Origin: Lepidodermella squamata
Taxonomy: Eukaryota; Animalia; Gastrotricha
NCBI GenBank assembly: GCA_047495785.1
Contig: JBLDXI010000009.1
Span: forward strand, 2,294,001-2,358,000
Direction: 5' to 3'
DNA: 64,000 nucleotides
Part shown: in pieces, positions 2,185-55,167 of the stretch
Layout of the letters: every line of letters starts with the position of its first letter
Numbering within the stretch: the stretch's first letter is position 1
Notes under the pieces: generated by a model
Databases searched by the model: none
Told to the model about the DNA's origin: nothing
The model's input: the letters and a program-made list of their open reading frames with translations, nothing else
Program-made: the position numbers and the translations under genes

Positions 2185-5100
2185 ATGAAAGTAACGTTGA
2201 AGATACTTTTCCTGCTTTTTAATTCGTTAGCTGTCATCGGTAAGCAGACTAAAGTCTGATAAACCCTATCACCAGAGATCACATTTTTTTAAACAGGTCA
2301 AGAGACAACAACTGTAGACTCCTCGGCGTTGATAGTTTGCCAGTACAATGACTGCACGGGGAAAGTCTTTCTCTCCTTCTCAGGCGGATATTTTCTTCAG
2401 CATTGCATGACCGCTGACGATACCATTCAGACTTGCGATACATCGACTGCAACCTTCGTTCCGCTGACAGATGCCAGCTTACCGAGCATAGCCTGCAAAG
2501 GAGATTACAAGTTCACCGTTCTCAGCACGGATTACTGGCTCGATGTCTATGACTTCAAGCGCTTTGATGGCACTGTCTGGGCAACTGTTGACTTGGGAGA
2601 GGCTTTCCACAACTATTTGTCGCGGCTGCGCGAGAATGAAGGTAAAATTATTTGATCAATTCACATCAAACTCAAAAATATTGCCTGATGTCAAGGAACT
2701 GGCTCATTTTACTGCAGCGCTCTAGTCAGCTCTACGCCTATAACCAGTACGACTGAGCTGAGTTACGAGAATGAAGTAGCTTGGTTCTACAATGGAAGTT
2801 ACTATGACATCGGGACTGACTCCACTGGTAACTTGGTCCAGCAGCCACAAGCTGTTGTGCAGCGTTTCTTGTACACCTACCCATACATCTCGCGAGACAT
2901 TGACCCCGCATGCGAATCCTCGGTGTGCTGCTGGTTCCAGGATGATATGCAGATCCTCTACAACGGGGAGTATCAAAATGTGCCTGCGGACTTTGTCTAC
3001 AATGGGACTAAGTGGCTAGTATGGGATAACGACCAATATAACCTGTATACAGGGGTATTCAATTGGGGGTAATTTGTATTTTCGATTTATTTCGGCGTTC
3101 ACAATTGAATTTCACAATAGGATTCTCGAGTGTTCCAACCACCTCTCGAACCTGGAGGTCTCAGATTCTGACGGGACTAAATACAAATTTATCAACGCAA
3201 CTCTGTGGGTTTTGGATAGCTCAGGAGAGCCAATCACTCTGGCGGCTCATGACATCCCATATTGGAACCTCGTCGACAGTGATTCGAGCGCTACCGGTGG
3301 CTATTACTACACACCAGATGAAGCGTCACCTGTAACCATGTGGAAAAATCACAGGTTTGTTCAACAAGCAGAAATGTTTAGACATTAAAGTAAAACCTTT
3401 CTCCCCAGTGGGATTTACTCTGTTTCGATTATCGATGGAGATTACGATTTCAAAGTGACAGACCAAACTACGGTAGCAATGACAGATGGTACAACTATCG
3501 GTGGAGATGAGACCTCGGCAGCTACAACAGCGAATGCAGCCACCACTGAGCCTGATTCAACCAGTACCCAATCCACATCTGAGCCTGATTCAACCAGTAC
3601 CCAAGCCACTACTGAGCCTGATTCAACCAGTACCCAAGCCACTACTGAGCCTGATTCAACCAGTACCCAAGCCACCAACCAGCCTGATTCAACCAGCACC
3701 CAAGTTACTACGCAGACAACGACACAGCCCAGTTCAAACACTGTCGCAACAGCAGCGACGACTACGACTCAGAGCAGCGCCACCTCCACAGTAACAGCCA
3801 CCACAGCAGCCCCTACTGCAACCACCCAGCCTTCTGAAACATCATCGACGGCAACCCAGGCCCAGACGACTCAGCCTACTACAACATCAAGTAGCACAAC
3901 TACCACTACTACCCCCACAACTACGACCACCCCAACAACAACTTCTACGACTACTACGACCACATCAACAACAACCACGACCACGACTACAACTACAACT
4001 ACTACTACACCACTGACGCCCCCTCCTTGCGTTTATGATGAAATGGATTTGGACCAGCCGAAAGATGCCGTATGCGCTGCACAGGCTGATGCGAACAAAG
4101 TCACTGGGATAACACTGTGCGATCCAAAAGATACAGAAGACGTTTGTGGACAGTATTACTACTGTTGGACGGTTCCCGACATTTTTGAAATGACGTGCTC
4201 TATGGGCATATGCCTTCCTGGTAAGCCACAATTCTCAATGACGAAATGATACTATTCTTAGTTTTTTTCTGAAAGCTTATGCAACTTTTTGCCCTGGGTT
4301 TTCGAATTCTTCGACAACGACTCAAGCTTCATCACTAGCGCGCAAACGTTCGATATTCAATTTTTGATTCAGCAATTTTAGTAATAACCTTTTCCTTTTC
4401 AGCATACAATTCGGCTTGCTCCTCGGACACCGAATGCTACACAGGGCGTTGCGATGGTGGGAAATGCTTATGTTCCTCTTGCACAAAGCTCCTCGCGGAG
4501 ATTGCATTCGATAAAATTCGAGGGGTTCCTTACTACCGCGAAAGATGCATTCGTATGTTCTCGTCTGTTTTGATTACCAGGGAATTAATCATTTATTTAA
4601 CAGCATCAAATAGCACGATTAATGAAGTTGGCGACACCTGCGATATGTTGAGCGATTCTCCGGCCAGCGCTTGCCAAACAGGCGCTACTTGCAGTTAGTT
4701 GAATGGTTTCCGTTTTGAATTTTCAAGCTGGAATATTTTTCTTGCAGTGAAGTGCCCGGAAGCATGGAAAAGTTCTGTCTTACCAGCAAAGTGCACAGGT
4801 ATATTGTCCTTTACCATTTTTTGATGTATTATCAGTTGTGAATTTCAGCTCTGAAAATCACAACGGCGGCCTGTTCCACTAATTCTTGCGGCTATCAGGC
4901 AGGGTGCAAAATGGTTGATGGAATATCTTTATGCACATGTACCAAGTCAGAATATTCTCTGGAATCAAATAAGGTGAGTTGATGATGATGATGCTGATGA
5001 ACCTCCTTATCCTGTTGCTTCACTAGATTGACTGCTACGGCTGGAATATTGTCAATCAAACAGAATGCAACGCAACGTGTGGCACTGGGTATTATCAAAT

Positions 5101-6388
5101 TACTCGAGTTTGCGATAAGAAATCCGGATCTAGCGCTGAGTGTGATGGCGACACTGTCATCTATGTCCCCTGCTCCGCAAGTGTTGAATGCCCCGGTAAG
5201 TGTTCCTCGATCCAGCTTTGATCTCCATAAACGATTTCAATCTTAGTACCGGCTGAGAAAAAATCGTCCGTAGTTTTGGTTGAAATTGAATCCAGAGTTA
5301 TCACGATTGAAATATTCGAGGAGTACCTCGAAAGCACCATCAAGTCTCTGATGGCATCTGCTCTGTCGACTAAATGCACGAATGACAGTGCCATGTTTGA
5401 GGGGCAGTGTTGCCCTGGCAAAGCCTGGTCTGCGGCTGTAGCTAAATACTCGGACTGTGTCAGCCAAACCGACGGTATCGAAATAATCAACAAATACTCA
5501 ACCGGCGAGAAGTTCAGATTCTACTTCAGCGCAAAAGGCGATCCAGCAAGCCAATGCTGCTCAACGGCGAGCGCAAAAACTCGACGAAAGAGAGCTGCTG
5601 ACTTTGATCAAAGCTCTTTAGCCTATATTATGGCGTCTTCGGGCGTGTAAGTGTATCCTAATCCAGCGTGACTAGACTTCACCCTTTGTCTTTGTACAGG
5701 CTCAATTCGTTTCAAACGGCGGTCCAAACTGTCGACCCTGATAGCACGTTGTCAGTTCCAGCAGCGACTACGACTACCGCGGCAACCACAACCACGGCAG
5801 CTTTAGCAGCGGGCGCGGCCACAAGCTCTGCAAGTGGAGGATCAGCAACTTCTTCTGTTTCCGCAACAACTACAACTACTGGCGTAGTTTCCGTCGCCCC
5901 TCAACAATCAGGTGGTAGTTCATCATCTTCGGTAAGACTTGCAACCAAAATAATTTGTAGCCGTTCCTTACCTTAATTTTCCCAAGTCTTCGGATGGCAA
6001 TGGAGCTCTCATTGGTGGTGTCGTTGGAGGAGTTCTAGGTGCCGCAGCGATTGGTGGAATCATCGGCGGCGTCGTTTATTTCATGAAAAAGAAGTAAGTT
6101 TCAAGCTAAAAATTACCCTTGAGTCACAATTATTCCTTTTTTATCAGGAATTCACCCAAAATATCGGATAGCAATAGGCCACCTAATCAAATCGCCACAC
6201 AGCGTATTTCTGAGGATACGATGATTAGAGGCCCCGCTCATGTCCCCATGGACCAAGATTCTCCTCGATTTATTCATGCGAATGTTGTGACGACGAAAGG
6301 GCCCCACCCAGAGTATCCATCTTATTACGGCCGTTACACTCAAGTTGGACCCAACAAGTCATTGGCCCCGACGCAGCCCTACGGCTAA
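2185..6388 (+). CDS. Array gene B: type I membrane mucin-like protein (signal peptide, unrecognised aromatic/Cys N-terminal domain, Thr-rich mucin, Cys modules, EGF-like, TSP1, SEA-like with RRKR, TM, Tyr tail)
   Basis: ATG 2185 gives MKVTLKILFLLFNSLAVIG (signal-peptide-like). ORFs 2329-2655, 2833-3072, 3074-3388, 3455-4249, 5276-5650, 5668-5976 and 6119-6388 join through short introns. TM ALIGGVVGGVLGAAAIGGIIGGVVYFM-KKK; tail PEYPSYYGRY..LAPTQPYG. Confidence 0.85.
3545..3709 (+). repeat. 33-bp coding tandem repeat x5 encoding (TEPDSTSTQAT)n mucin
   Basis: Unit actgagcctgattcaaccagtacccaagccact repeated about five times with few substitutions, followed by ACN-codon poly-Thr to ~4010. Confidence 0.9.
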
Positions 6389-7742
6389 TGAGAGCCTTGA
6401 AGGCGATGTGATCTTTCCGATGTAAAGAGATGACAGATCATTCTGAATGATTTACCAATATATCTTGCGGCAATCTCTTCTGGCTATAGCTTTACTCAAG
6501 ATATTCGCCCGGTGTTATTTTTGTTGCACTTTCTGAGTGTAAAAAGACTAATATAAGCTGACTCTTTTCTGCAGTGACATTTTCGAATAAATAATTTTTG
6601 TTCGGCATGTTTTGATTTGGCATGTTTCGAAGTATTATATCTTGCATTCGCATGTTGAAAAATACGACCAGGTGTTATCGAGACGAATTTCGACCCTCAG
6701 ACCGTCTGATTATTCGCAATTCGCAGGGTATATTTTTAAGCTCATGTATTATGCATGCTGCTCTATTTATTGGAATTTCTACATCGCATTCGTGACTCGT
6801 GACCTATTATTGTGTATCGCCTCCAGAATAAAATGCGGTATTAATGCTCTATCGGTGTTTGGAAATTCGATCGAATTGTCATTAATGTTAAAAACAAGTG
6901 GTATTGCCTTATCATTCAATTATCGAAATCGAAACGATTTTCAGGCCATGGGAAGGAGGATACAATTGAGAGGACTCATTGCCGAAAGGCTAAGCTAATT
7001 ATAACACTCGAGTTTGTGACCCATTGGCGCATCCTACAGCTAAAGGATTAGTTATCAGTTAGTTGCTGAACGCTACATAGATTCAAGTCAAATACTTATT
7101 TATTATTTTTTACTTCGTTGAGCTTAATCATGCCAGGTTATCGTCTATATTCATTGCTCAGGTGGATACTAACACTTATACCTCTAACTAATCCTTCTCC
7201 ATTTGCTGGTGCTTATGATTAAGATAAAGATATGATGCAGATGAGGGTTTCGATTTTTCGATAATTCGCTGGGAGATACATATTACGTCAGCAGGAGTTA
7301 TTTGATGAACATCCAAGTCTGTTGCTAATCAAACGTGGACCCGGCAACCCGGTGCATGTTGGATAAAGTTGGCGGTGCACCCATGCAGATCGCAATCACC
7401 CACGTGTAACATCGCATTTCCTGGCTACTCTCGCCTCAGCTGCTCTTCAAACTGTGCATCGACAATATCGCACCTGCGAACAACGCAAACAAGCCGTAGA
7501 GGTCCCTTATCGATAGTTCTTTATCGATCGTATGATCTTTCCAGAACAATGAATCATAATTTGTTTGGTGGAGGTGAAATAATGATTAAATTTGATTCTG
7601 GCATATTATACCTCACCGAAAGCTTATTGCTCTGTGCGTAGCAATGAAACGACCCACCAAGGGAAAGATAAAATATTCTGAAAGCGAGCCATAAATTTGC
7701 TTTTATTGATTCTCACCAAAGACAATTTATTGCCGATATCTG

Positions 7743-8403
7743 ATGGCTTCTTCTCTAACAAGCACCAAATCATTCAACTCCACAACGTTGGTTAGGAAAA
7801 ACTCTTTATTTTAGCTTGAAATAACGCTGATTTTATATATTTTATTAGCCCTCATCGAATAATAATCAAAACAGCGATTCTCAAATCGGGGCGATCATTG
7901 GAGGAACGATCGGGGGAATTGTCTTTATAATTCTTGCTGTTGGGTTAATTACTTACGCGATTTCATGGAAATCGTAAGTCAAAGGTCTTATATATTAACT
8001 CATTAAGAAAATTAATCAAAATTGCAGTAAGAGGCGAAAGGTAGCTGCTGGACAAACTGCTAAAAAGATGTTTGCAATCAAAGCGTTGGTTGCGGCTTCC
8101 AGACCAACTCGTCCAACTGCAGCTCGAATCGGCACGAGACCAGCAACGAGACCCATCATAGATCTACCGCAACCTCACTTTGAGTCGTCAGAACAACACG
8201 GAAACCCAAACAAAATGAAAGCTGCAACTCGTGTAATCATGCTTGGAAGCTCAATAACCTCGCGACCGGGTCAAGGTGTTGCTAACTACCCTCCGTCATC
8301 CGAACACCTGTTTCACGGTGGGAGCCAGACTCACTTCAATCCGTATTCCCAACCTGCTTTCGTCGAGCCAGTTTATGCTTCAGCGCCACCTTATGGTAGA
8401 TAG
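7743..8403 (+). CDS. Array mini-gene E: ectodomain-less TM + tail paralog (or alternative 3' exon pair of gene B)
   Basis: Exons 7743-7790 (MASSLTSTKSFNSTTL), 7849-7973 (PSSNNNQNSDSQIGAIIGGTIGGIVFIILAVGLITYAISWKS) and 8028-8403 (KRRKVAAG..RPTRPT..NYPP..PPYGR) are in phase. TM exon has the same phase 0/phase 2 borders as in genes A-D. AATAAA at ~8559. Confidence 0.65.
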
Positions 8404-8894
8404 GCCTCTTTATTTTTGCATCCATCTAGCGTTCTAGAATCCACCTAGAAGGCTCATATGCGATGTTTCCATGTTTCCATGTTTCGTATTCCCGATGTCC
8501 ACAGCGACTTTTTATACTCTCTACTTATTGTTATACAGACGAATAGTAATTACTTATTAATAAAATCATTCTTTCAGATGGAAGATGGCGTTGTTTGAGC
8601 CATTCTTCCACTATTTTTCTTTCAAGCGATCTCAGCCAACGGCTGTAGTCGCCCTGGCAGCTCTGTAAAATCAGCCAGAAAAAACCACTTGTTTATGTAT
8701 CGGAATTCGTTGAACGCGGTATGCTTACTTACGCTGCCTAGCAAATCATCATCGACAATATGAATTATTCAGCGGCTACAAGAAGAGGATTTCACCCTCT
8801 TGAAGGGTGTAGCACTTTTACGGCAAACAATTTCTCGGTTGTGTAAAATAATTTATTCTTAGCAGTGAAATCTAGCACGAGATCAGCAAATGAC

Positions 8895-11800
8895 ATGACG
8901 AAGGTAAGCCTCTCAAAGTCAGCATGGTTCTTCTGTTAAAGGCCTTCGTATAGGGAACATACAGAATCCTAATATCATGCGCCTTACTGAGCGCAATGAT
9001 ATCTTTGATTTACGGTGGGTAATTACGCTAACAGCTTTGATACGGTAAAACTGAGTTTCAACTCATTCAGGTCAAAATAATGTTACAACATCAGCTAACG
9101 CGACGGCATCGGCTACTACTACGTTAGCCGCGACCACAGTCAAGTCGAATACTAGTAAAAATCTTCACAACATGGATATATTTCTTTTTAAATTGTAAAT
9201 CTCAGCAAATACCAATGCAACTTCAAGCTCGGCTTCAAACTCTACGTCCACGAGTTCGAATTCCACATCCTCAAATGCTGCAAGCTCGAACAGTTCTGCC
9301 ACTGCAGCTGCAGGTAATTACTGCGAATGATAATTTAATGATCTATCAGATTCTCCCTCTTTCTTAGCTAACGCTGGTGAGTTGACGGCTAGCGAGTATG
9401 ATTTTTATACCTTATTTTCTGTTGAAAGCAACGACTGCAGCTACAACTGCGGCTGCGGCTGCAACTACAGCTGCGGCTGCGACTACAGCTGCAGCTGCTG
9501 CTACAACAACAGTCGCAGCAACGACACAAGCCGCGACTACAACAACAGCAGCGACAACTACAACTACAGGTTGATGGGTCTCACGTTGATTGCTATACTT
9601 ACCGAAGATTATTTTACCAATAGCTTCATCGTCAGATGGCACCCCTGTGAAGCCAACAAAGGTATACTGCGGCAACACAACATACTGCAATGGGACAGGA
9701 TTCACTGACAGCTTGGGCACAATTTATTGCATTACCAGTGATCTTCAGATACAAGAATGTGATCCTGATACAGAAGATTTCGATCCGGTTGCTGCGGGCG
9801 CCTTGGCATACTTGCCATGTTTTGGAAATTTCACATTCACTGTTTTGAGCACCAAGTTTTGGCTGAAAGACATCTACCTGCTCAAACACAATGGGGTGAA
9901 ATACGTCTATACTACCTGGCCGTCTTTGGATTCAATGACCAGGTACTTGTCGCGATTGAGGCAAAATGAAGGCTCGGGGTGGTTCTATTGCGCCGCTTCG
10001 GTTTACACAAAGCTTAATAACGGCACATACACATCAACGAAAACCGTTGCTTTCTACTACAACGCAACGAACTATTACGATGTAAAAGTCAACGCTTCGG
10101 GTTACTTGACGTTGGCTACTCAGGAAACTAAACAATCAGCGCTGTACACTGTCCCATTCGTCACCAAGGACATCGACGGTTGTGCCTCGACAGTCTGTTG
10201 CTGGTTCCAAGATACTTACAATGTTTCTAGTACCGAGAAAGGCGTCACTGATTTCGTGTTTAATGGCACGAAGTGGACTTACTACGTTAGCAACGCCTAT
10301 ACCGTCTACACGGGTGATTTTAACTGGGGGTAAGGATGCATTCCGTTAACTTGGATTAGCTTAGATTTTGGATATAATTTTTTATTCAGGATTGCGAGCT
10401 GCGCTGCTTATTTGTCTAATTTCGCTTACAAAATGGCAAATGGTACCAAATACAAGTTTGAAAATGGATCTGTTTATCAGACAACCAGCAGTGGAGCCGT
10501 AACAGGGCCTGCTAGAGTTGATACTAAGCACGATGAACTGATCGACTCCGATCCTTTAGCCAGTGGAGGCTATTACTTCACTTTGCCATCAAGTACCTGG
10601 GGCATGTTCAGAAATCAGAGCGGCAATTACAGCAGCACTGTCAAGAACGGAGACTTCTCCTTGAGCAAAGTTCCTCCCAGTTGTACCGAGGGTGGTAAAA
10701 GGCTGTGGCAGAACGCGTCTCCAAGATGTACGGCGTCCACCGATGTGATCAGGTTGACGAGAAACATACCTTGTGATCTTCAAGAATCTCCTAGTATCTG
10801 TGGGACTGGTTACAAGTGCATACCTATACCCACGGTGTTTAGCATATCATGCAGCATGGGCTTTTGCATGCCTGGTAAGCTACGAAATTTCGCTAACCTC
10901 TGATAATCGGAACTATGTATAGATTATGAAAAATGCACGCCAACGACTACAACTTCTACTACAACTACTAGTACAACAACAAGCACCACCACCACTACCG
11001 CGCCTACGACCACAACAGCAGCTACGACAACAGGAGTAACAACAACTGCTGGCACGACGGCAGCCCCCACGACAACCCGTCCGACAATTACCGGCTTGCA
11101 AAGTGAGTTTTTGTATGGTTTCATGTTGCTGGCTCAACCAAAACCTGACTATCATAGAATATGGGTCATATTGCTACGTTAATTCTGACTGCTTCACCGG
11201 CCTTTGCGTCAACAACACCTGTTCTTGCTCTTCGTGCTCTCAAATTCTTGCTGGTTTCGACTACGATTACACGAAATCGTCGCTGTACTACGTCGAACGA
11301 TGCATCCGTAATGACTTTATCTTTACTTCGGGAATTCATTTTAAATTTTTCATAACAGCGAGTAACAGCACAATTGGTGGTCTGGGTGACACTTGCGATC
11401 TCTGGGCCGATATGAAATCAAAAGCCTGTGGCAATGGGCTTGTTTGTGGTATGTGCGTCATAAATTCTTGGTTATCGTGGTTCAAGTTTGTTGTTACTTA
11501 AGCTAAATGCCCGGAAGCGTGGAAGAGCTCAGTTACCCCAGCGAAATGCGTTTGTAAGTTCTTAACAAGGGTAATGTGCCTATCTTCGAAACCGATTTAC
11601 TATAGCTCTGAACATCTCTTCATCTTCATCATCGGAAACTTGTCCATCGACTTATTCCTGTGGATACAAGGCTACATGTAAAATGATTGGTGGAGTACCC
11701 GCATGCACTTGCACTTCTGCCGGATACGCACTTGAGTCGAACGGTGTTGATTGCTACGGCTGGAGCATTACCAGCCAAACCACTTGCGGAGTCACCTGTG

Positions 11801-13326
11801 GCAACGGAGCGATAACAATTAATCGAGTTTGCGACAAAAAGAACTCGTCCACCGCTGTTTGTTCGGGCAATACTACCCTTACCCAGTCTTGCAAAGCTGC
11901 ATCTGCCTGCCCTCGTAATATAGTAAACCTTCTTGAGATCCCTAATAATTATTTTTGATTAATCACAGTACCGGCCGAAGCTTTGCCTGCTTGTGTGCTC
12001 ATTGAAATCACCTCCAAAGTGATCACTGTCGACATTTTCGAAGGTTACATCGAGTCGCCCATCAAAACTCAAGTAGTTACAAGTCTTAACTCAAAGTGTA
12101 TCAACGACAGTTCAACCTTTGAGGGGCAGTGCTGTGTAGGGAAGGCTTACTCTTCTAGCATTACAGCCACAGACTGCATCAATCCTACAACTGGAGTCAC
12201 ATTTCTGAACAAATTCAGGTGAGATTAGTGGAGACAGTGTAGCGATTTCTAAGATGTATTTATCAGCACTGGAGAGAAGTTCCAGTTTTACATGATGGCT
12301 ACAGGCGACAAAACCAGTGATTGCTGTTCAAAAGCATCGGCCAAATCAAGTCGCAAAAAGCGAGCTGCATCAAGTGGAGCTTTTGATCAAAGCATTTTGG
12401 CTGCTATCGTCTCCGGAACTACTGTGTACGAAAGGAGTATTGCGATATTACTATAATTTTTGTGAAATATTTTTCATTAGGATGGACGCGATCAAAACAG
12501 CGGTGAAAAATGTAAGAGCCTGCCGAATCGAATTATTGTTATGATTATCGAGCAATTCTGTGATAGGTCGATCCTAGCGCTGTTATTCCAGCTGATGCTG
12601 TTTCTATTGCAACAACTACAACAACGACTACCACTGCGGCAACAACCTCGAGCAGTTCTGGTTCTGGATCCGCTGTGGCAGCGGCTGTTGCGGTAATTTA
12701 GAAACTGCCTCACTGAAGCATTTTAACTAATTGCGACTTCCTTTATTATAGACAGCTGCTCTGGCTGTGTGGGTGTACTACGCAATTGGAGGTGGCTTAG
12801 GCGGATTGGCGTTGATAATCATTGTTGTCGTGATTATTGTGGTGATGCAGAAAAAGTACGATTTCTCGCAAATTATATCTCCCACCTTAATTTGTGCCTT
12901 TTCAGGAAAAATGCAGCTACCAAAGTTGCAGCATTCCCACAGGACCCGAATGATCCCGGTGTTCGACCCATGGTCAATTTACAAGTACAGCAGGGTGGCC
13001 CAGCAATGGCTCATGGTCACCTAGAACCAGTCGCTGGCTACAACCAAAGCGCCGTTGGCTACCATCAACCCCAAAACGGAGGGTATGGTGAAAATGCTGC
13101 CTACGGGGGTCAAGATGCAGCCAATGCGTACCCTCAGCAAGGCACGTATGATCAAGCAGCTTTCGACTACGCCAGCTACTACGGTCAACAGGCTGCCTAT
13201 GACCCTAATGCTGCAGCTGCTTACGGGCATGCGGGTGCCGCCCCTGATTACCCACCATATTACGGCCATTATCCGCAAGCTGCGGATGTACAAGCGATTG
13301 CTCCTCAGCCAGCTCATGGCTATTGA
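8895..13326 (+). CDS. Array gene C: type I membrane mucin-like protein, same architecture as gene B
   Basis: Spliced start MTK|GTYRILISCALLSAMISLIYG|QNNVTT (signal peptide), several small S/T/A exons, ORFs 9590-10333, 10412-10903, 11103-11501, 11683-11958, 11983-12222, RKKR at 12352-12363, TM VWVYYAIGGGLGGLALIIIVVVIIVVM-QKK, tail 12906-13326 ..PDYPPYYGHYP..IAPQPAHGY. AATAAA at 13491. Confidence 0.85.
9430..9570 (+). repeat. Low-complexity coding repeat (Thr/Ala mucin tract of gene C)
   Basis: Repeating acgact/gcagct/gcggct codon pairs encoding TTAATTAAAAATTAAAATT. Confidence 0.75.
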
Positions 13327-13709
13327 AAGGAGTATCCATTATATCAAACCTAGTCCCATTTTATTATCCCGATTGGCTGAATAGCCCGTGATTATTAAGG
13401 CTGACTTGCATACACCATTGCAATATTTTGCGGTCCTTGACCTTTCTTTGCAGTAATATTTTTTTCTGTTTAAACTGTGCTGTGAATTACAATAAAATGT
13501 GATAACTCAAACTTGGTATAATCTTCTTATTTACGACTTCTTATGTATGGAAAAACCTGCTAACAAACAACTTATATTGGCGGTGTTTGTTTGAAACGTG
13601 TTTGTTTTGAGGTTTTCATTTCTGCTGTCACGTCGTCGCAAACAAGTAAACTCAGTGGCTGCAATGAATACTGCGAAATTATGATAAATTCCTATATATC
13701 TAATATACG

Positions 13710-16700
13710 ATGATCGTGTTCAAATTTCTGGCTTATCTCTCCTTTCATTCTGCATTTTGCCAAAGCCGAATCAAGTATTTTAAGAATTTCGAAATCCCGG
13801 CTACAACAATTTGGCCTTTGTTCGAAATAACCGAAGAATCAACAACCCCAACTACAACAAACTCGACAGAGGAATCGACCACTGTTAGGGAAATCAGCGA
13901 AATCCACCCAAGAGGTAGCGATGGGGCGAAATCCTTCTTCCTAGGGATGGATTTCAGCTTCCCACATTGCAAACCATCCGCCTGTCACGGCTTAGCGTTC
14001 GGTTACCAATACAAAAGCTGTTTACGATCGGATTACCAGCTTCAGGAATGCAAATTCGAGATAAGGACCAACACGACCTCGAAATGGTCCTACCAGCCGT
14101 TGACTTGCCTGAAAGCTGTATCAAGCGTGCCATGCCATGGCCATTTCAACTTCTCAATCCTATCGACAAGATATTGGCTCAACAGCACGATATTACTTGC
14201 ATGGAGTGGTTCAAACTGGAAGAATGTAGATATCTCACCCTACACGTATTACCTCGCCCGTTTGAGACCTAATGAAGGAAACGGGAGTTTGTATTGTACA
14301 GGGTTTCGATCACCCTCTAGCAGTTTGGTCTACAGCGCTTTTAGCTATTTTTACAATGGTAGTTACTACGAGTTATCTACCGATAACGGAGGCTATATGT
14401 ACAAGGCTAAAATTATCGATGATAGCGGGTATAGGAAGTTGGCCTTCTTCACGAGGAATGAAACTGGTTGCCAGAATCCGATGTGTGTCTGGTTTCAGGA
14501 TGAATACACGGCCACACTGCCGAATGGAACTGTCTCGGCTGAGTTGACAGAGTTCAGATATTCAAATAAATGGTTCGTATGGATTGCGGCGGAAAATAGT
14601 TACATCTTGTACACGGGTCCTGTAACAAAGAGGATGGCGCAGAGTTACGTGAAATACTTCTCCGACTACACATGGACTTTGACGAATGGAACGACTTACA
14701 GTTACATCAACGGAACTGTATTTCGGTTGGATGACGACGGCCAGCCGATTCGAAGTTGGTCTTCTATCGGGCTGTGGTGGTGGAATTACTGGGATTATAC
14801 AGCGTGCGACCCGCAAGCCACCGGTGGCTACTTCTTCACGTACCCAGGGTCAGATCGAACAGTTTATCGTAACAGCAGTGGAGAGTATGATTGCTCGATA
14901 AAAGATGGGGAATTTGAGTTTCTCAAGCAATACGAAACCGAGCATAAATGCAACGACTCGGCTGAATCAAGTGGCAACGGTCGGAAATTCTGGTCTTGCA
15001 ATGCAGCGGCCGACCAACCCGGTGATAATACCTTGTCTGGTAATTTAAATTAAATAAATTTCGATTATTTTTTATTTCGAATTTTTCTTCAGTATGCGAT
15101 CCTGAGGATGAATTCTCTTGCCCGCAAGGCTTTCGATGTGTCAAATTTCCGGAGGTGATTGAAAAAGTATGCAGCCTAGGCATCTGTATGTCCCATGATT
15201 CACCCAACTCCACTTACCAACCCTTGCTAAGTGAGTTTTTTCCACTCATTTATTTTTCATTTTTCAACCAACTTTCCTGCAAAATAAGAATACGGCGAGG
15301 TTTGTGAGCAGCATTCGGATTGCTTTACTGGGCTATGCCTTGATGGTAAGTGCTCATGTTCGAGGTGTACGAAAATTCTGTCTGCAATCGATTACAACTG
15401 GATGACGTCAAGCTATGAATACAAAGAAGCGTGCATACGTATGTTTTTCCGAATTGCTAACGCGTAGGTATATTAATTGAATTTTTTATGAACGTCGCAG
15501 CTATTAAAAGCGCGATCGGCGGGCTGGGTGATTCATGCAGCCTTTGGCCGATAGCTAAAGACAAGGCCTGCGGGCATGGTATGGTATGTTCTAAGTGCCC
15601 GGAGCATTTCGATATACCGATGATTGACGCAACATGCAGTGGTAACAAAAAATAACTTGAAATTGATGAAAAAAACGAGGCAAATTTTTTATAGCTTTGA
15701 AACTAGTCGACTGGAGCAGGTGTGAAGATGGCCACAGGTGTGGTTACAATGCTAAATGCGCTGTTATCGGTAATGTCTCTACCTGCATCTGCCCAGATGG
15801 TTACAATTTGGAGTCGAACATGGTTGATTGCTACGGTTGGAGGCCGTGGAGCGAGACGCCCTGCAGTGCAACTTGCGGCAATGGCGTCGTTCAATTAAGC
15901 AGGATTTGCGACAAATTGCCCCATTCATCAGCTGCTTGCGATGGGAATGCAACAGTGCTTGCACCATGTTCCGCAGCAGTTCCTTGTTCTTGTGAGTAAC
16001 CGCGAAAATTTCCGCATAATTTCCCATATATAGTCATTTTTAGTGCCACCCTCCTTAAAAAAATCAGCAGCTCATGTGAGAGTTCAGACAAAATCATTGA
16101 AAATGAGCCAGTTTGACGCGATTCTGCAACCTCAGCTGAAAAATTCTCTGGCAGAATTTCTCACTGATATGTGCCTTCAAGATAGTGATATTTTCGAAAA
16201 TCAGTGCTGCCCTGGGCGAGCTTGGATTTTCCCGCATGAAGCTTACGATTGCGTCAGCAACACTACGGGAATAATATTTGTCAACAAATTCAGCGACCCT
16301 GATCAGTCATCTTTCAGCTTTTACGTAACGGCGCAAGTCGATCAGAACAGTATATGCTGTAAAGGGGCTCCAGTGATAAGCGAAGATTCGAGCAATAGGA
16401 AGCCGAAGAAGACTGTAAAGATAGCTTCAAGCTTCGATGCAGAGATTCTGAGCGAACTTCTCGCAACTTCGAAGCAAATGTGAGATTTACCTTGTTATAA
16501 GGCTTTATATCAATTTAATGTGCTTTCAGGATGTCGACTTTAACTACGATTTTCAAAAAAATTGATCCAAAGTCAAAAATATTAATCATGTCAAAAAGCG
16601 TCGAGTCAAACCGCGATCAAGTAATTAAAAATTCCTCCTTAATTTTTTAAATTTTCGAATTTTTTACAGAAATTTTCGCACAGCGCGAACGATTTTTTTC

Positions 16701-17061
16701 TGTCCGCAAGTGGGATTCTCATAGCAATTACAGGCGCTTTGTCGGCGATTGCTATTTTAGCCATGACTGCATTGCTCTTCAAAAAGTTGGTTCAAAACTG
16801 AAATTTTACGATGAAAATTTGAGTTTGATTTTCAGGAAAACTTCGAGGACTTCGTATAAATTCAACTCATCGAACGAGCCCATTTTCAGTTTTGCCAACA
16901 TCTGCGGCTGGCGGCGCCGAGGTTCATCTACTGCTGAAGTCACGCCGAGCCACCCTGACATTCCGATTATCAACGCGTTCCATCCCACCTACTTCGAGCA
17001 GTATCGGCCGAAAAAAAGCAGCGTGCGAAAATCATCAGCTCTTTCCCTGAACCAACTCTAG
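13710..17061 (+). CDS. Array gene D: divergent paralog with intron-poor 5' half, short mucin tract and no furin site
   Basis: ORF 13710-15053 has a signal peptide plus the shared motifs CHGHFNFSILSTRYWL, YLARLRPNEGNGSLYC, CVWFQD, ATGGYF. Later exons give YGEVC..DCFTGLC, EGF-like/TSP1 (15697-15999), SEA-like (16043-16483), TM ~16695-16785 FFLSASGILIAITGALSAIAILAMTALLF-KK, tail with HPTYFEQY. AATAAA at ~17092. Confidence 0.82.
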
Positions 17062-19436: not shown

Positions 19437-21315
19437 TTACCGCCGGAGAAGTAGCAAAATAGCCCCCAATACTAGACTTGTTGTCCTTGAGCAAATCCCG
19501 GCGCCATTACTGCTGGTCGGCATTGAAACATCGCTATCGGCCAGGTTACGTTTCCGCTTTTTCAGCGAAACCAGGGTGATCGGATTCGACGGCATCTGTT
19601 GCACCCCAGCAGCCGCGGCACCCATCGACGGTATAGCATCGCGCGGCGCATGGGCCACCTTTTGAAACAGCTTGCCTTCATCAGGCTGGCGGCGCTTCGA
19701 CGACGAAATGCCGGCCGAAGCGTTCCAGCGCGAAAATAATACGCAATTCTGCTGTAAAATCGTTTTAGGCTTTTTCGGAGGCGTAGACCCATTTGTAGCG
19801 CTATCGGTTGATGGTACCATTGTAACCTCAGTCCTCATTAGGAAAAAGTAAGAACAGTGTTGGTCTAGGGTGCAAGCCCTGCTGCAGGTTGCTTCGGACG
19901 AGTTGGCAATTGTCGCTCGATGAACGAGAATTTTCATCGAATCATCTGCGACTGCTACGTAATCTGCTCCCTCGCTCGGATTCGCTGGAAAATTTAAGAA
20001 ATATTCGAATTAGTTTATTCCAGCCAAAAGACTTACAGTAAGCTTCCCAAGGATCGTTCTCTCCAAGAGTCGACGAAGCGTAGCTTTGATGCATAGCTGC
20101 CGATGGCGAGTTGCTATTGTCGAAAAACACCATTTCCAGCGGGTTCGTTGTATTTTGATCCACCAGCACCGGCTGGTCGCGCTGTTGTTGGTCAAATGAG
20201 AAAATTTCATTGCTAGACATCGCCGGGTCATCGCCTCCGTCAAGGTGCTTCCGCGCCCGCTCGAGAGCGGCCGGCACCCAGTAGTCCTTACGGAAGTATT
20301 TAACCCAGGATTCGACTGCTAGCAAATCGCTAGGCATCGTTTCTGGGCACACCTGGGCCTTCAGATAACAGACGTCGCCTTCAAAGTCGTAAGTAAACCC
20401 GGAACAGTTAGCCATTGTCCGGCATGTTGATGCGCAGGATGTAACGTCGGTAAAAACTGGCGGTACTGCCAGTTGTCCAGGACATGAACCATGCATAGCA
20501 GTAAATCCCCATAATTCTAAAAAATTAAAAATAAATTATAAAATATCCCTGAAATTAAGAGCAATTTTTCTATGAATTTTGACTAGTGGACCGGGTAAAA
20601 TGGGACATTTTAGGCTTTCTGACTCTGTTCCTCATTTTCTTCAAACTTCGGCCCCAATTTTAAGAGCAATTTTAGAAACTGAGGGGGCCTTCTATATAAT
20701 AAGCTATACAATAAGCTTCCAAAATAAACCGCTGATCGTTTAATAACGTTATCCTATAGCACATTTCAAATTGCCAAAAATAATAAAAAAATTGAACAAT
20801 TCTCGATTTTTCCAGAAATATCAGGATTCATCTTCCCCGCCTCCAGTTCAAATTTTAGAATTTTCTAAAAATACTGAAATATGGCTCTGTCCAAAGTTAC
20901 CCTTCTATTACGGTACCCGGATTTTTTTCCAAAATTAATATAATTATTTTCCAACAAATTTACCATTTTTATAAAACACCACTGGGGTGTATCGAGCAGG
21001 TTTGATGCGGTCGCATAGGCCCCATTTTAGCCAACAATGCTGTTCAAGGTGATCAAAGGAAAACCCGCGACAGCCCGTATATCTCTGGCATTCATTCGCA
21101 CAGCCTTGTACGTCAACGGTAACTGGTTTCTCGTTTAAAAACATATCGGCGCAATTGCCGATCAGCATAGTAAATCCGCGAACAACTGTAAAAATATTTA
21201 AAAAATCACAGGAAATTAAAAAGCTCACTTCAAACTTACGAGGTCGCTGGCATTTCGCAAGGCTCGACAGGTAGACAAGGACGAAAAGCGCTGGTCCCAA
21301 CCTCTGAAGCATCAT
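19437..21315 (-). CDS. Secreted/GPI- or membrane-anchored protein with three PAN/Apple domains
   Basis: Signal peptide MMLQRLGPALFVLVYLSSLAKC; PAN signatures CANECQRYTGCRGFSFD..CWLK, CASTCRTMANCSGFTYD..CYLK, CSRACTLDQHCSYFF..CVLF; KKRKR followed by hydrophobic C-terminus SSNGAG..SLVLGAILLLLRR. Confidence 0.85.
20590..20915. mobile_element. Degenerate non-autonomous DNA-transposon remnant in PAN-gene intron
   Basis: gggtaaaatgggaca (~20593) and tgtccaaagttaccc (~20888) are imperfect inverted repeats; right end ..ttacggta resembles the CCGTA termini of the other MITEs here. The intron is much longer than the local ~50 nt norm. Confidence 0.35.
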
Positions 21316-39574: not shown

Positions 39575-40508
39575 TCACAAATTTCCAAATGTATTGAATG
39601 GAGTTGGAAGCGTCGATGATGAGCGTGAGTAATTCAGCGGCTGATTATTTTCTGAATTCGAGCAATATTGAGAAAACACAGCAGTGGGAATTTGAAATGT
39701 CTGAAACTGGTTCATCATCATTTGACTCATTGAGCCAGCCGTATTAGCTTCAAATTCGCGTTCATTTCGAACAGCAGCAGCAGCCGAGTTTGACGTTAAT
39801 AGTAACCTTGCTGCTTCCTCGGCTGTTAACATGAAGAGCCTAGCTATGTCGTAGGCGAGACGTGTTCGTAGAATCTCTATGTAAGTCTCGATTGGAGGAT
39901 CGCTGAGCAAATAACTTAAATCCATTCGAGGCATCGGCGGTCTCACAGGCGTTGGTTGAATGATTGAGCCATTGTTAACGCTCGACGGACTCGCACTGTC
40001 ATTAGTTGGGACATGGCAATTCTGAGAAGATGGCGTCGAGTTGGTCGATATTATTTCACTGCTGGTTCCTCGCCGAAGTACCGCCCGCCTGGCACTTAAA
40101 CTCAGATATTTACCTGGTAAATAAATTGAGAAAAATAACGAAAAATAAATTAAATAAAATGCGAACTTGTCATTCCGGCAGCAATGCATTTTGTAAAACG
40201 GCATTTAACGCAGTATCGACGCCGATTCGAGTTGTGAATAAGGCAAGAATCATCTCCAGCTAGGCATAGGAGTTCCGAATCTTTTTGGCGACAATACCGT
40301 CGGAAAAATTTCTTAAAAAATAATTATCACGTTAATATAGGATTTATCCCGGTCAAATTTTCTTACCTGACAAGCTTCACAAATACTTTGATAATATCCT
40401 CGTCGCGGTACAATAGCCGCGTCGCAAACCTGAAATTCAATATTTTATATCAAGATAAAAGCTTAATTTATTCTCAGGCACTTGTCATACCTTGCAAATT
40501 TTTTCCAT
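39575..40508 (-). CDS. Nuclear-receptor DBD-only protein NHR-B (CEACQ P-box, no LBD)
   Basis: MEKICK|VCDAAIVPRRGYYQSICEACQ|KFFRRYC..CLAGDDSCLIHNSNRRRYCVKCRFTKCIAAGM, then a single S/P/Q/M-rich exon to the stop at 39575 that lacks the LBD-like motifs of NHR-A/C/D. Confidence 0.8.
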
Positions 40509-52100: not shown

Positions 52101-55100
52101 TTGCACGCATCGTTTGAATGTAATGCTGAAGTGCAGTTGTGTATCGTTCCTGTACGCGGGCAACGGCCGGTCGGTCGATAAGTTCGGCTCGGTCGTCGCT
52201 GAATAGCGTCACCAAAAGCAACAAGATGAGCATCACATCATCCACCTTAATTTAATAAAAATTTCATTAATTTAAATTTTTTGAATATTAAAATTTCAAA
52301 CTGACCTGCAATTTAAGTTTGAGAGTTTCGACAAGCTTGACAAGGCCATCGACGATGATGCTGTCGACCATGCGGCGCAGTTCCGAGCTGTGGATGCCAA
52401 AGTAGTTTGGGTCATCGGTCGGGTCTAGGAACATGTGCGTCTCCGGGTTGTAGGTCAGCGCCGATCGCAAGATGAGCAGGTCGAGAGCGCCGCCGCGCAA
52501 CAGCGACTTTTGATCGTCCAAATTCAGCGAGCGGAACAACTGAATATTCTTGAACATGGATACCATGCGGCGGAAGCTAATCTCGGACACGTTCAGCAAA
52601 TCTTCCTGGCACGTCACGCCGTTGCCGACTGTTGTCGGTGTACTGCTCACATCCTGCATTACTAGCAGCGAATTTTTCCACGCAGTTACGGCTTCATCGA
52701 TTAGGTGACAGTCATCCACCGTCAACTCGTTGGCACTCGGCGGGATGTAATAGCCCTGGATGAAGCAAAAGCAAATGTGTTTAATAACAGCATCTCGAGC
52801 GAATTTTCTCAAATTCTGAACAACTTGAGTCAAAAATGTATTTTTCGAATACTCTAACTAGACACAAACAAATTTGACGACTTCAACTCAGGTTTCCTTA
52901 AATTTGAAAATCATTTTAAAATAGTAAATTAATTTTTAATTATTCAATTATTTTTTTATTCAAATTTAAAATTGTCAAAAGTTAAATCTCTACCCAATGA
53001 GTCTTGCCGCTTGAATTTTTGAATGGATAGCGAGATTCCTCGCCACAGAATACCTAAATTAGAAAACGAATCAGTGTTTGAGATTGACAGCTAATTTTCA
53101 AGTGAGGCGGCAAAATTTTTGAATTTGAAATTCTCAATTTTGCACAATGAAAATTGGTTCTCAAAACACCTTTCTGAGTGATCGACAATTTTTCAAAAAT
53201 CGATGATATATGAAAGTATTGGTAGCGCTGAAAAGCCCAAGAGGCGATCCATTTTTCAGTGAAATTTGCCAATTTTTATTAGTCCACTAATGGATAATCA
53301 GGGCCCAAAACTCAAAGTGTCCACTTTTGGGGTAAATTTTCAATTTTTCGAGGGTAAATTTTTCAACTCATTTTTCAGCGATCTTGCTGGCTATCAGCCT
53401 CGTTTTTAATGTTTCAATCATTCATTGATCTTGAAAATTACACAAGACTAAAAATGTTGCCAACCCCTGATTTCCAAAATTTAAAAACAAGGTGAAATAA
53501 TGCGATTAGATCCATTTTCATTAAGACGGATTTTTTTCGAAGAAAATGGCGAAATGTGAATAAAATCAGCTGATGTATTGTAATATGATAAGCTCCCCTT
53601 CCAAGAAAATCACGAAATGCGTGATTTGAACGTGATAAAATTCAAAATTCTGAACTTGTCCCTGAAAAACCTCGCACGCAAATACGTCGTGAATTTCTAA
53701 ATCTAAAAGTTGAGAATCAAATTAATTAAAAACGAAATGAAAGTCCTATACTTTAAATTTCTGAATGATTTATTCAAATGCAATGACTCTTACCTGTTGG
53801 TCGTACTGCATCGGCTCTGACTTGTATTGTTTACCGGCCCTATCGTAGCCAGCCGAGCCCGGTTGAGGTGAGACGTTTTGACTACGATTCGCCGACTGGA
53901 ACGACGAAGCTGAAGGGCTGCGTTTTTTCCCACCAAATCCGCCGCTTTCGTGCCCGCCAAACGCCTGCGAGCTGCTCGCGCTGTTACCGTCCGGGTACGT
54001 GTCTTCATCCTCCGACATGTGGCTCGACGTCGACAGCACAGAGCCGTCCTTGCTCTTGGTCGAACCGCCGCCTGTCTCACGTTTGCGTTGCTTCTGCTCC
54101 TCGCTCTGAATATACTCGATTCGCATGCCGACGCGGAAGCACTTGCGCAAGCGACACCGGCGGCACAGCTTCCGGTTCGCCTTGTCGATTTGGCAATTAT
54201 CGTTGTACGCACATCGAAGACTTGACTACACAATTAAACAAATTAATTTAATTTGACTTTAATTAATTAATTAATTAATTTAATTTAATTTAACTATCTA
54301 TTTGTTCAGAATTGCCTTACGACAAATAAATTAAAGGAAAAATTTGTCCGTTTAAAATTTTCGTAGGCGACCCTGCCAAGCTGTCCGAGGATGACATGTT
54401 TTCATGATGTGATGACATGATTAATTTAACAAAACCACAAAAATTGCTCGTATATCATAATAAATGTGAGGTTTGAAAAGTTCACGTGAAAGCTGAGACT
54501 AGATTAGAGTATCAAATTCCCTCCGTTTTTACGAGAGCCATTCAACGCGTAAATAAAAAGTCCGACATCGACAATTTAGTGAGTACAAAAAATTATTATT
54601 ACCAGTTTTTGCGCATTCCTCCTGAAGAACGCTTTGCAGGACTCGCAAGAAATTGCGTCGAAATTATAGCCGAGCGCTTTATCGCCGCAAACCGTGCAGA
54701 TTTTTGCGTATTTCCGTTGCGTATGCGGCTTCGGCGGAACAACCGACCCGTCTGATGAGTGGCGCGGCACTTTCTGCGGCGTCGACCCGGTCGAGCTCGG
54801 CACAGCACTGGTCGACGCCCTGGCCGAGCCAGTAGGCACGGGTAGTGACTGTAACGACGAAAGCCGCGAGTGATTTACGGCGATGTCTGCCAGGTCTAGC
54901 AGATGCGTATGCGCGACCGCGCTCAGATCCGACAACTGCGGCCTGGCCTGGCCGACAGGCAACGAGGCCGAAACTCGTAGCGGGTTATTGTTACCTGACT
55001 GGTGGTACTGATGTGCCTGAAGAGCCGCTGTGAAGCTGACCTGCTGCTGCTGGGATATGAACGCTGACCCGGGCTGATCGTTGATATTCTGGGCCTGCGC

Positions 55101-55167
55101 CTGGGCTTCGTCACTTGTCTGCCGGTTGCTGTTCAGCATCATCTCGACGGCATGCAAACGACGGCTG
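49124..55167 (-). CDS. HR96: NR1J-group nuclear receptor (HR96 / NHR-8 / DAF-12 / NHR-48 family)
   Basis: [32 protein letters not shown] (CESCKA P-box typical of NR1J) and [30 protein letters not shown]; [38 protein letters not shown]; AF-2 PLMRELL. Exons ~54603-55167, 53794-54225, 52306-52756, 52097-52245, 49124-49646. Exact orthology within NR1J and the true 5' end are unresolved. Confidence 0.9.
50883..50965. repeat. 83-nt near-perfect hairpin (32-bp arms, 19-nt loop) in HR96 intron
   Basis: aatcaccccaattcatttaccgaaagcatgaa vs ttcatgctttcggtagatgaattagggtgatt: 30/32 complementary. Confidence 0.8.
51266..51365. mobile_element. 100-bp MITE (Tc2/pogo-like CCGTA termini) in HR96 intron
   Basis: 25-bp TIRs ccgtaaactacagtatagaggccgc / gcggcctttatactgtagtttacgg (1 mismatch), TA on both flanks, internal tgcggc..tatt direct repeats. 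Confidence 0.9.

Follow-up and report, generated by a model that had tools for sequence, protein, structure and literature searches.

In phyla that have been little sampled, orphan domains of extracellular proteins are a frequent finding. In overall layout, the described systems closest to the genes considered here are the membrane mucins and SEA-type receptors (MUC1/MUC13/MUC16-type, and MUC4 with NIDO-AMOP-vWD), which combine a signal peptide, globular modules, Ser/Thr-rich stalks, a juxtamembrane dibasic site of the processing type, one transmembrane helix and a short Tyr-containing tail. In predicted structure, the nearest known systems are the β-propeller lectins and adhesion domains, the hairpin-stack proteins and the Fpg/Nei N-terminal β-sandwich. 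Herein, we describe a gene array of the gastrotrich Lepidodermella squamata that has the membrane-mucin layout. The window, meaning the whole stretch of DNA analysed, comprises 64,000 nucleotides (nt) of contig JBLDXI010000009.1 (C9:2294001-2358000), and its first 17 kb are the end of a head-to-tail array of genes on the plus strand, the last four of which are designated A, B, C and D. Genes B, C and D hold three copies of an extracellular domain, about 325 residues long, that had not been described before, and the domain of gene A lies just upstream of the window. We read this domain as a lineage-restricted head on single-pass receptors of the mucin/EGF/thrombospondin type 1 (TSP1) kind, with ligand recognition suggested by the architecture, and assign this reading a probability of roughly 0.6.

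The domain opens with a C-x4-C pair and closes with the last G-x-[FL] hairpin, a span of about 320-335 amino acids (aa). Its copies in the window, together with their open reading frames (ORFs) and introns, are as follows.

About 2338..2641, plus strand: gene B, domain exon 1, from C-x4-C to R-L-R-E-N-E-G (ORF 2293-2652; donor GT 2642-2643).
About 2696..3068, plus strand: gene B, domain exon 2, with G-S-F-Y-C, F-Y-N-G-S-Y-Y, C-C-W-F-Q-D, F-V-Y-N-G-T-K-W and Y-N-L-Y-T-G (acceptor AG 2694-2695; donor GT 3069-3070).
About 3121..3354, plus strand: gene B, domain exon 3, with a conserved Cys, an N-G/N-A hairpin and D-S-S-A-T-G-G-Y-Y (acceptor AG 3119-3120; donor GT 3355-3356).
About 3409..3456, plus strand: gene B, start of domain exon 4, with the last two hairpins, S-G-x-Y ... 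I-x-D-G-x-Y-x-F (acceptor AG 3407-3408).
2642-2695, 3069-3120 and 3355-3408, plus strand: GT-AG introns of gene B.
9653..10329, plus strand: gene C, domain part 1, from the first Cys pair to Y-x-V-Y-T-G (ORF 9590-10333; alignment A1; GT donor 10330-10331).
10330-10389, plus strand: GT-AG intron of gene C.
10390..10687, plus strand: gene C, domain part 2, with N-G-T hairpins, D-P-L-A-S-G-G-Y-Y and the last hairpins (alignment A1).
13710..13763, plus strand: gene D leader of 18 codons, Met and a hydrophobic signal-peptide-like N-terminus, followed by a short Thr-rich stretch.
13947..14984, plus strand: gene D, complete domain in a single exon, 346 aa as modelled, core at about residues 8-327.

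The introns of B and C are all of the GT-AG type and 52-60 nt long, and the DNA reading showed that frame and family motif were restored at each junction. In C, the acceptor AG at 10388-10389 restores the frame via a split Gly codon; in B, the acceptor at 3407-3408 restores the family motif Y/W-x-N-x-S-G, and the block Y-L-S-R-L-R-E-N-E-G / G-S-F-Y-C is split by a 54-nt intron. Exon 4 of B continues into a Thr-rich mucin stalk (Thr-rich ORF 3455-4249). The whole N-terminal part of D is contained in one exon (ORF 13710-15053), in which the leader ends in Cys-Gln and reads as a putative signal peptide. The D copy is the reference of alignment A1. B and C were analysed exon by exon rather than as joined proteins, and the structure models were built from the single-exon copies D and L002.

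The remaining members of the family were sought in the 121.2-Mb, 151-contig assembly of the same animal, with D as the query, then phmmer re-scoring of open frames, and then a profile search. This whole-genome search revealed 20 domain copies across 18 genes, arranged in three clusters. Cluster 1 (C9:2259-2310 kb) has 11 genes, ending with A-D; cluster 2 (C9:3304-3319 kb) has 4 genes on the minus strand; and cluster 3, on a further contig (C73:205-228 kb), has 3. Paralogue exons matched D at E-values of 1e-20 to 1e-23 and the own-genome profile matches reached E-values down to 7e-93, a likeness far above chance, with pairwise identities to D of 21-45%. Two loci of cluster 2, L004/L007 and L014, each hold two tandem copies of the complete unit within a single open frame.

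C9:3308-3315 kb, minus strand: tandem double domain, L004:706-2553 and L014:1501-3132.

Since the repeat in these two-domain genes takes in exactly the whole unit, it delimits the unit as a domain independently. The last third of the first copy in these genes diverges more. Ten paralogue pairs were compared for the proportions of nonsynonymous (pN) and synonymous (pS) differences, and pN was 0.17-0.42 vs a pS of 0.65-0.95; with synonymous sites saturated in nearly all pairs, these values state that pN is well below pS and do not amount to a ratio of substitution rates (dN/dS). A pN so far under pS indicates that the copies are old and under purifying selection. Given that the GT-AG introns restore frame and motifs and that pN is well below pS, we take the copies to belong to real genes.

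A first-pass annotation, made from the letters of the window, had described an unrecognised N-terminal domain with five shared blocks and six quoted hairpin units in B, C and D. All of these blocks and units were found as placed, and the searches for known families bear out that the domain is unrecognised. Scanned against Pfam at E up to 1-10, neither D, nor the B and C pieces taken exon by exon, nor any of the 37 aligned pieces, nor the environmental proteins P0001-P0005 gave a match; there was sub-threshold scatter, the best being HTH_ABP1_N with 17 bits vs a cut-off of 22.5, and no confident match to an existing domain. Hidden Markov models (HMMs) of CW_binding, YD or related repeats had no match in the 37 pieces at E up to 10. 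The sequence profile search of the PDB returned nothing credible; two antibody chains, at E 0.04 and 0.33, were taken as noise. The ESM Atlas gave no usable match. Word-index protein searches with D alone and with A1 came back blank and say little, as P0002 was also missed by them. The full HMM search, the check that the annotation had suggested, covered 1.84 billion representative proteins and yielded six at E 0.001 or better, of which five are true relatives, all environmental, and no known family was among them; as records of the animal itself may fall outside the protein searches, the absence of further relatives does not extend to annotated copies from L. squamata. Many public rotifer proteomes gave no match in this HMM search, which makes a rotifer source unlikely and suits an unsampled phylum; a nematode source was rejected, as the genome contains no SL1 leader. 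As far as public data show, the domain is restricted to this animal and the environmental relatives. The sixth protein, P0006, was rejected as spurious: it is a bacterial CHU_C/Ig-like repeat protein in which a 49-position stretch matched seven times.

Two ENA metagenome assemblies and one Logan run are the sources of the five relatives. The open frame of P0001 encodes 804 residues with two domain copies, and its identity to L014 is 37% across 560 aligned columns; it is flanked by an L002-like gene upstream and a TSP1-containing frame downstream, the same order as in cluster 2. Two near-identical contigs of 28-32 kb from a relative of L. squamata, L031 (ERZ23486787 scaffold_1294) and L034 (ERZ27333047 k141_993982), were recovered from independent assemblies. 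Both show the gene order of cluster 2, with Somatomedin_B/SBSPON-like and protein kinase genes close by, and their family genes are orthologues with an identity of about 37%. In a tree built on the middle third of the domain, the halves of P0001 paired with the matching halves of the two-domain genes of L. squamata (support 99/98 and 92/91), P0003 grouped with L002 (93/74), and P0002 joined a clade comprising both C73 genes along with a single array-1 copy on a long branch (92/93). These groupings indicate that the internal duplication and no fewer than four lineages of the family arose before the split from the environmental relative.

The structure of the domain was predicted with AlphaFold2 from A1 with D (346 aa) as the target. 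The model had a mean predicted local distance difference test score (pLDDT) of 85.9 and a predicted template modelling score (pTM) of 0.79, and contained about 30 strands and four short helices, in line with the all-beta character that the annotation had proposed. The [ND]-G units quoted there sit on two-residue turns between adjacent predicted strands, and the turns of D that carry [ND]-G or S-G are at 137-138, 206-208, 255-256, 310-311 and 320-321; this placement supports the hairpin reading of the predicted structure. The C-terminal lobe of L002 (152 aa), which has the canonical cysteines, was modelled with alignment A2, in which environmental sequences are included, and gave the same strand pattern at pLDDT 92.5 and pTM 0.81. 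The prediction is best described as a compact packing in which blade-like meanders of four strands, not arranged as a propeller, are combined with long hairpins and an SH3-like unit.

In the PDB, no Foldseek row reached E 0.001 (best values 1.7e-3 and 0.11, TM-scores 0.1-0.2), and in BFVD a single row fell under 0.001 (E 6.5e-4), with a TM-score of 0.11 and a root-mean-square deviation (rmsd) of 22 Å. No structural match was obtained to the known lectin folds (C-type, F-type, galectin, β-trefoil, β-prism, H-type and propeller lectins). The weak Foldseek rows were nearly all propellers. When the best 975 chains, mostly propellers, were re-aligned, single blades fitted model residues 14-53, 64-98 and 294-329 at an rmsd of 1.6-3 Å, and longer alignments to those chains gave 10-13 Å. 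The domain could on this account be a very divergent member of a known fold, a β-propeller or some other adhesion or lectin domain overlooked by the searches; each of the three residue ranges does fit one propeller blade, and a missing match is, by the search tools' own notes, no proof of a new fold. We regard this as quite improbable. A genuinely new fold is a candidate reading, which we consider less likely than not.

Two specific arrangements were considered, of which the propeller was rejected and the internal repeat found no support. For a β-propeller, only one blade aligned, and no radial ring of four to eight blades was found. For an internal repeat, hhalign comparison of six sub-blocks gave a probability of 32% at best (P 5e-4, 21 columns), with all other pairs at 16% or less. 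By the same comparison there was no propeller-type repeat of about 40-50 residues, and a tandem repeat of about 20 residues of the choline-binding type was likewise absent from both the Pfam search and the internal comparison.

Conservation was counted by column over all copies of L. squamata and the environmental relatives. D288 and G293, both in D-P-x-A-x-G-G-[FY]-[YF], are the sole invariant positions (20/20 rows), and D-P-x-A-x-G-G is the most conserved motif. G65, F69, R105, W182, D185, G256, G312 and G321 are kept in at least 84% of rows. RLRxNEG had been proposed as an invariant functional site; R105 is present in 25/28 rows, the other positions vary, and the consensus of the region is R-[LFV]-[RK]-x-x-[ED]-G. 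As the motif lies at the predicted end of a helix and the next turn, a structural role would be as likely as a functional one. In its strict form, aromatic-x-x-[ND]-[GA]-x-x-aromatic, the hairpin motif was counted 21 times across the aligned pieces vs 2.3 ± 1.5 in shuffles; most of these lie at two homologous positions in many copies, so the count is not one of independent events. Of the earlier interpretation, the unrecognised domain and its all-beta hairpins stand, whereas its construction from repeats, with at best a 32% probability in the profile-profile comparison, is not demonstrable and the invariance of RLRxNEG does not hold.

Three cysteine pairs are lost only jointly. The first domains of L004 and L014 lack both C63 and C117, L008 and L015 lack both C175 and C180, and D lacks both C181 and C233, with Val and Ser in their places. 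This co-loss points to three putative disulfides, C63-C117, C175-C180 and C181-C233 (D-domain numbering), and two further disulfides probably lie in the N-terminal four-Cys module; such bonds would fit an extracellular domain. Additional cysteines of D, at domain positions 54, 287 and 316, may represent a relocated disulfide, and the branch of D is the longest of the four window copies.

The cysteine pattern bears on whether the 325 residues form one domain or a string of two or three modules, namely the N-terminal four-Cys module, a first lobe at about 59-165 and a second at about 166-330. Several features would suit a string: lobe 2 of L002 folds more confidently by itself (pLDDT 92.5), the structural matches fall into separate ranges, B and C have introns near residues 112 and 228, and the last third is the more divergent part of the first copy in the two-domain genes. 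However, no putative module stands without the others in any of the 20 copies or five environmental proteins, the intragenic duplication took the whole unit, the proposed C63-C117 and C181-C233 disulfides would each span two units, and the whole-domain pTM of 0.79 indicates that the parts are packed in a fixed manner. We therefore consider a string of modules unlikely and treat the unit as a single domain.

The position of this domain within its proteins was read from the ORF translations. The modules common to A-D are, in order, the leader, a short Thr-rich stretch, the domain, a small Cys-rich module, long Thr-rich mucin-like stretches with further Cys-rich modules, an EGF-like module and a TSP1 repeat, a juxtamembrane module, a hydrophobic transmembrane segment and a tail with P-x-Y-P-x-Y-[YF]-G-[RH]-Y. 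The modules downstream of the domain are alike across all three clusters. By this sequence-read topology, the domain is placed as the first folded unit past the signal peptide in 18 paralogous single-pass membrane proteins.

15838..15987, plus strand: TSP1 repeat of gene D (Pfam TSP_1), preceded by an EGF-like module; context, outside the domain.
1-2000, 5231-5650, 11959-12453 and 16034-16480, plus strand: juxtamembrane module, conserved in all copies.

TSP_1 in D scored 35.8 bits vs a cut-off of 21.6 (residues 48-97 of ORF 15697-15996), and its pattern C-x-G-W...C-x-x-T-C-G-x-G was also found in A, B, C and the other clusters, so that the repeat belongs to TSP_1. In the EGF-like module of D, the EGF families scored under the Pfam cut-offs. 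Thr-rich ORFs lie at 3455-4249 and 10907-11179, and hydrophobic segments followed by basic residues were read from the translations of frames 1304-1483, 5954-6094, 12752-13021 and 16643-16798; a Ser/Thr-rich stalk, a single transmembrane helix and type I topology were all recognised in this reading. The dibasic site of the juxtamembrane module, R-[RK]-K-R, is R-R-K-R in A and B and R-K-K-R in C, and D has R-K-P-K-K instead. The juxtamembrane module of D (16043-16480) gave no Pfam match at all, SEA included, at E up to 1, and the likeness to SEA is positional only.

Between B and C, a frame at 7999-8400 on the plus strand ends in a Pro/Tyr-rich tail (...A-P-P-Y-G-R) like the receptor tails. No head domain was detected upstream of this frame, which could belong to a family member that is truncated or lacks the head.

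Considering this layout, it seems probable that the head is a ligand-recognition module. As judged from position and architecture, the domain would be a membrane-distal recognition head, raised above the glycocalyx by the mucin stalk, and would bind an extracellular ligand, either protein or glycan. The core would be common to all paralogues, with C-C-W-F-Q-D, Y-x-x-Y-T-G, D-P-x-A-x-G-G-Y-Y and the R-L-[RK] helix serving mostly to build it. The stretches at about 121-133, 186-199 and 262-287 are variable in length and sequence and have lower pLDDT; these would be the loops that differ between paralogues, and they may be the likeliest source of paralogue-specific contacts.

If the ligand were a glycan, as the annotation had suggested, the domain might be a lectin in which the conserved aromatic and acidic residues form a carbohydrate-binding site. 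The specific support for this is compositional (aromatic residues make up 16.7%), and we find a lectin rather doubtful.

The sequons raise another alternative, a structural role with no specific ligand, in which the domain would be a heavily N-glycosylated spacer or anchor between the cell membrane and the glycocalyx or cuticle. N-x-S/T sequons total 160 vs 73 ± 7 in shuffles, about twice the density, and these recur at five or more aligned positions; mucin stalks are present, and a cuticle covers the gastrotrich epidermis. A family of 18 old paralogues with 30-45% identity, purifying selection and a conserved cytoplasmic tail looks more like a set of diversified receptors, and a spacer or anchor is accordingly judged improbable.

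Several points weigh against the reading of a ligand-recognising head. The function of the head is deduced from architecture alone. The disulfides are proposed from cysteine co-loss, and the placing of the variable loops on one face is a proposal as well. The alignment is shallow, consisting of 20 domain copies and five environmental sequences. The structure searches cover the PDB and BFVD, and a relative may exist among unsolved proteins. The high sequon density could mean that the surface is largely shielded by its own glycans. With these points considered, a recognition head remains the reading that we prefer. The fuller proposal, that the domain is a new fold, a compact, disulfide-stapled packing of blade-like β-meanders other than a propeller, that arose in gastrotrichs or diverged beyond recognition within them and serves as the variable head by which an 18-member family recognises cues from the environment, from microbes or from other cells, is advanced as a tentative one in which we have less than even confidence.

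Should the models be correct, the domain is large, is predicted with confidence to be all-beta and has neither a PDB neighbour nor a Pfam family, and it would be a candidate for a new fold and a new family entry. The receptor family that it heads ranks among the larger ones in this genome, the first from long reads for a phylum that has hardly been studied, and the domain would mark a lineage-specific part of cell-surface biology, be it recognition, adhesion or attachment to the glycocalyx or cuticle. The single-exon copies, D and L002 on the same contig, are directly expressible.

Other frames in the window lie outside the receptor array.

54576-55157, 52288-52833 and 39575-40204, minus strand: nuclear-receptor-type zinc-finger motif (C-x2-C...) and ligand-binding-domain-like sequence.
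19942-20496, minus strand: Cys pattern C...C...C-S-G-F-T-Y...C-Y-L-K, presumably reminiscent of a PAN/Apple module.

Judged by the zinc-finger and ligand-binding-domain-like frames, the array is followed downstream by several nuclear receptor genes.

In comparison with known systems, the head domain has aromatic-rich four-stranded antiparallel meanders and tight Gly turns in common with the β-propeller lectins and adhesion domains (tachylectin/RSL/PVL type, hemopexin, EPTP of LGI1 and Kelch). With the hairpin-stack and single-layer β-sheet proteins (CPAP TCP10/G-box, YD/Rhs shells, phage tail fibres and choline-binding repeats), only 36-46 residues align, and unlike these proteins the present domain is compact, putatively disulfide-bonded and non-repetitive. 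The membrane mucins and SEA-type receptors share the order of parts of the whole protein, from signal peptide to Tyr-containing tail. Unlike in these receptors, the head of the gastrotrich proteins matches none of the mucin domains (no Pfam NIDO, AMOP, vWD or SEA), and the common layout is interrupted by an EGF-like module with a TSP1 repeat.

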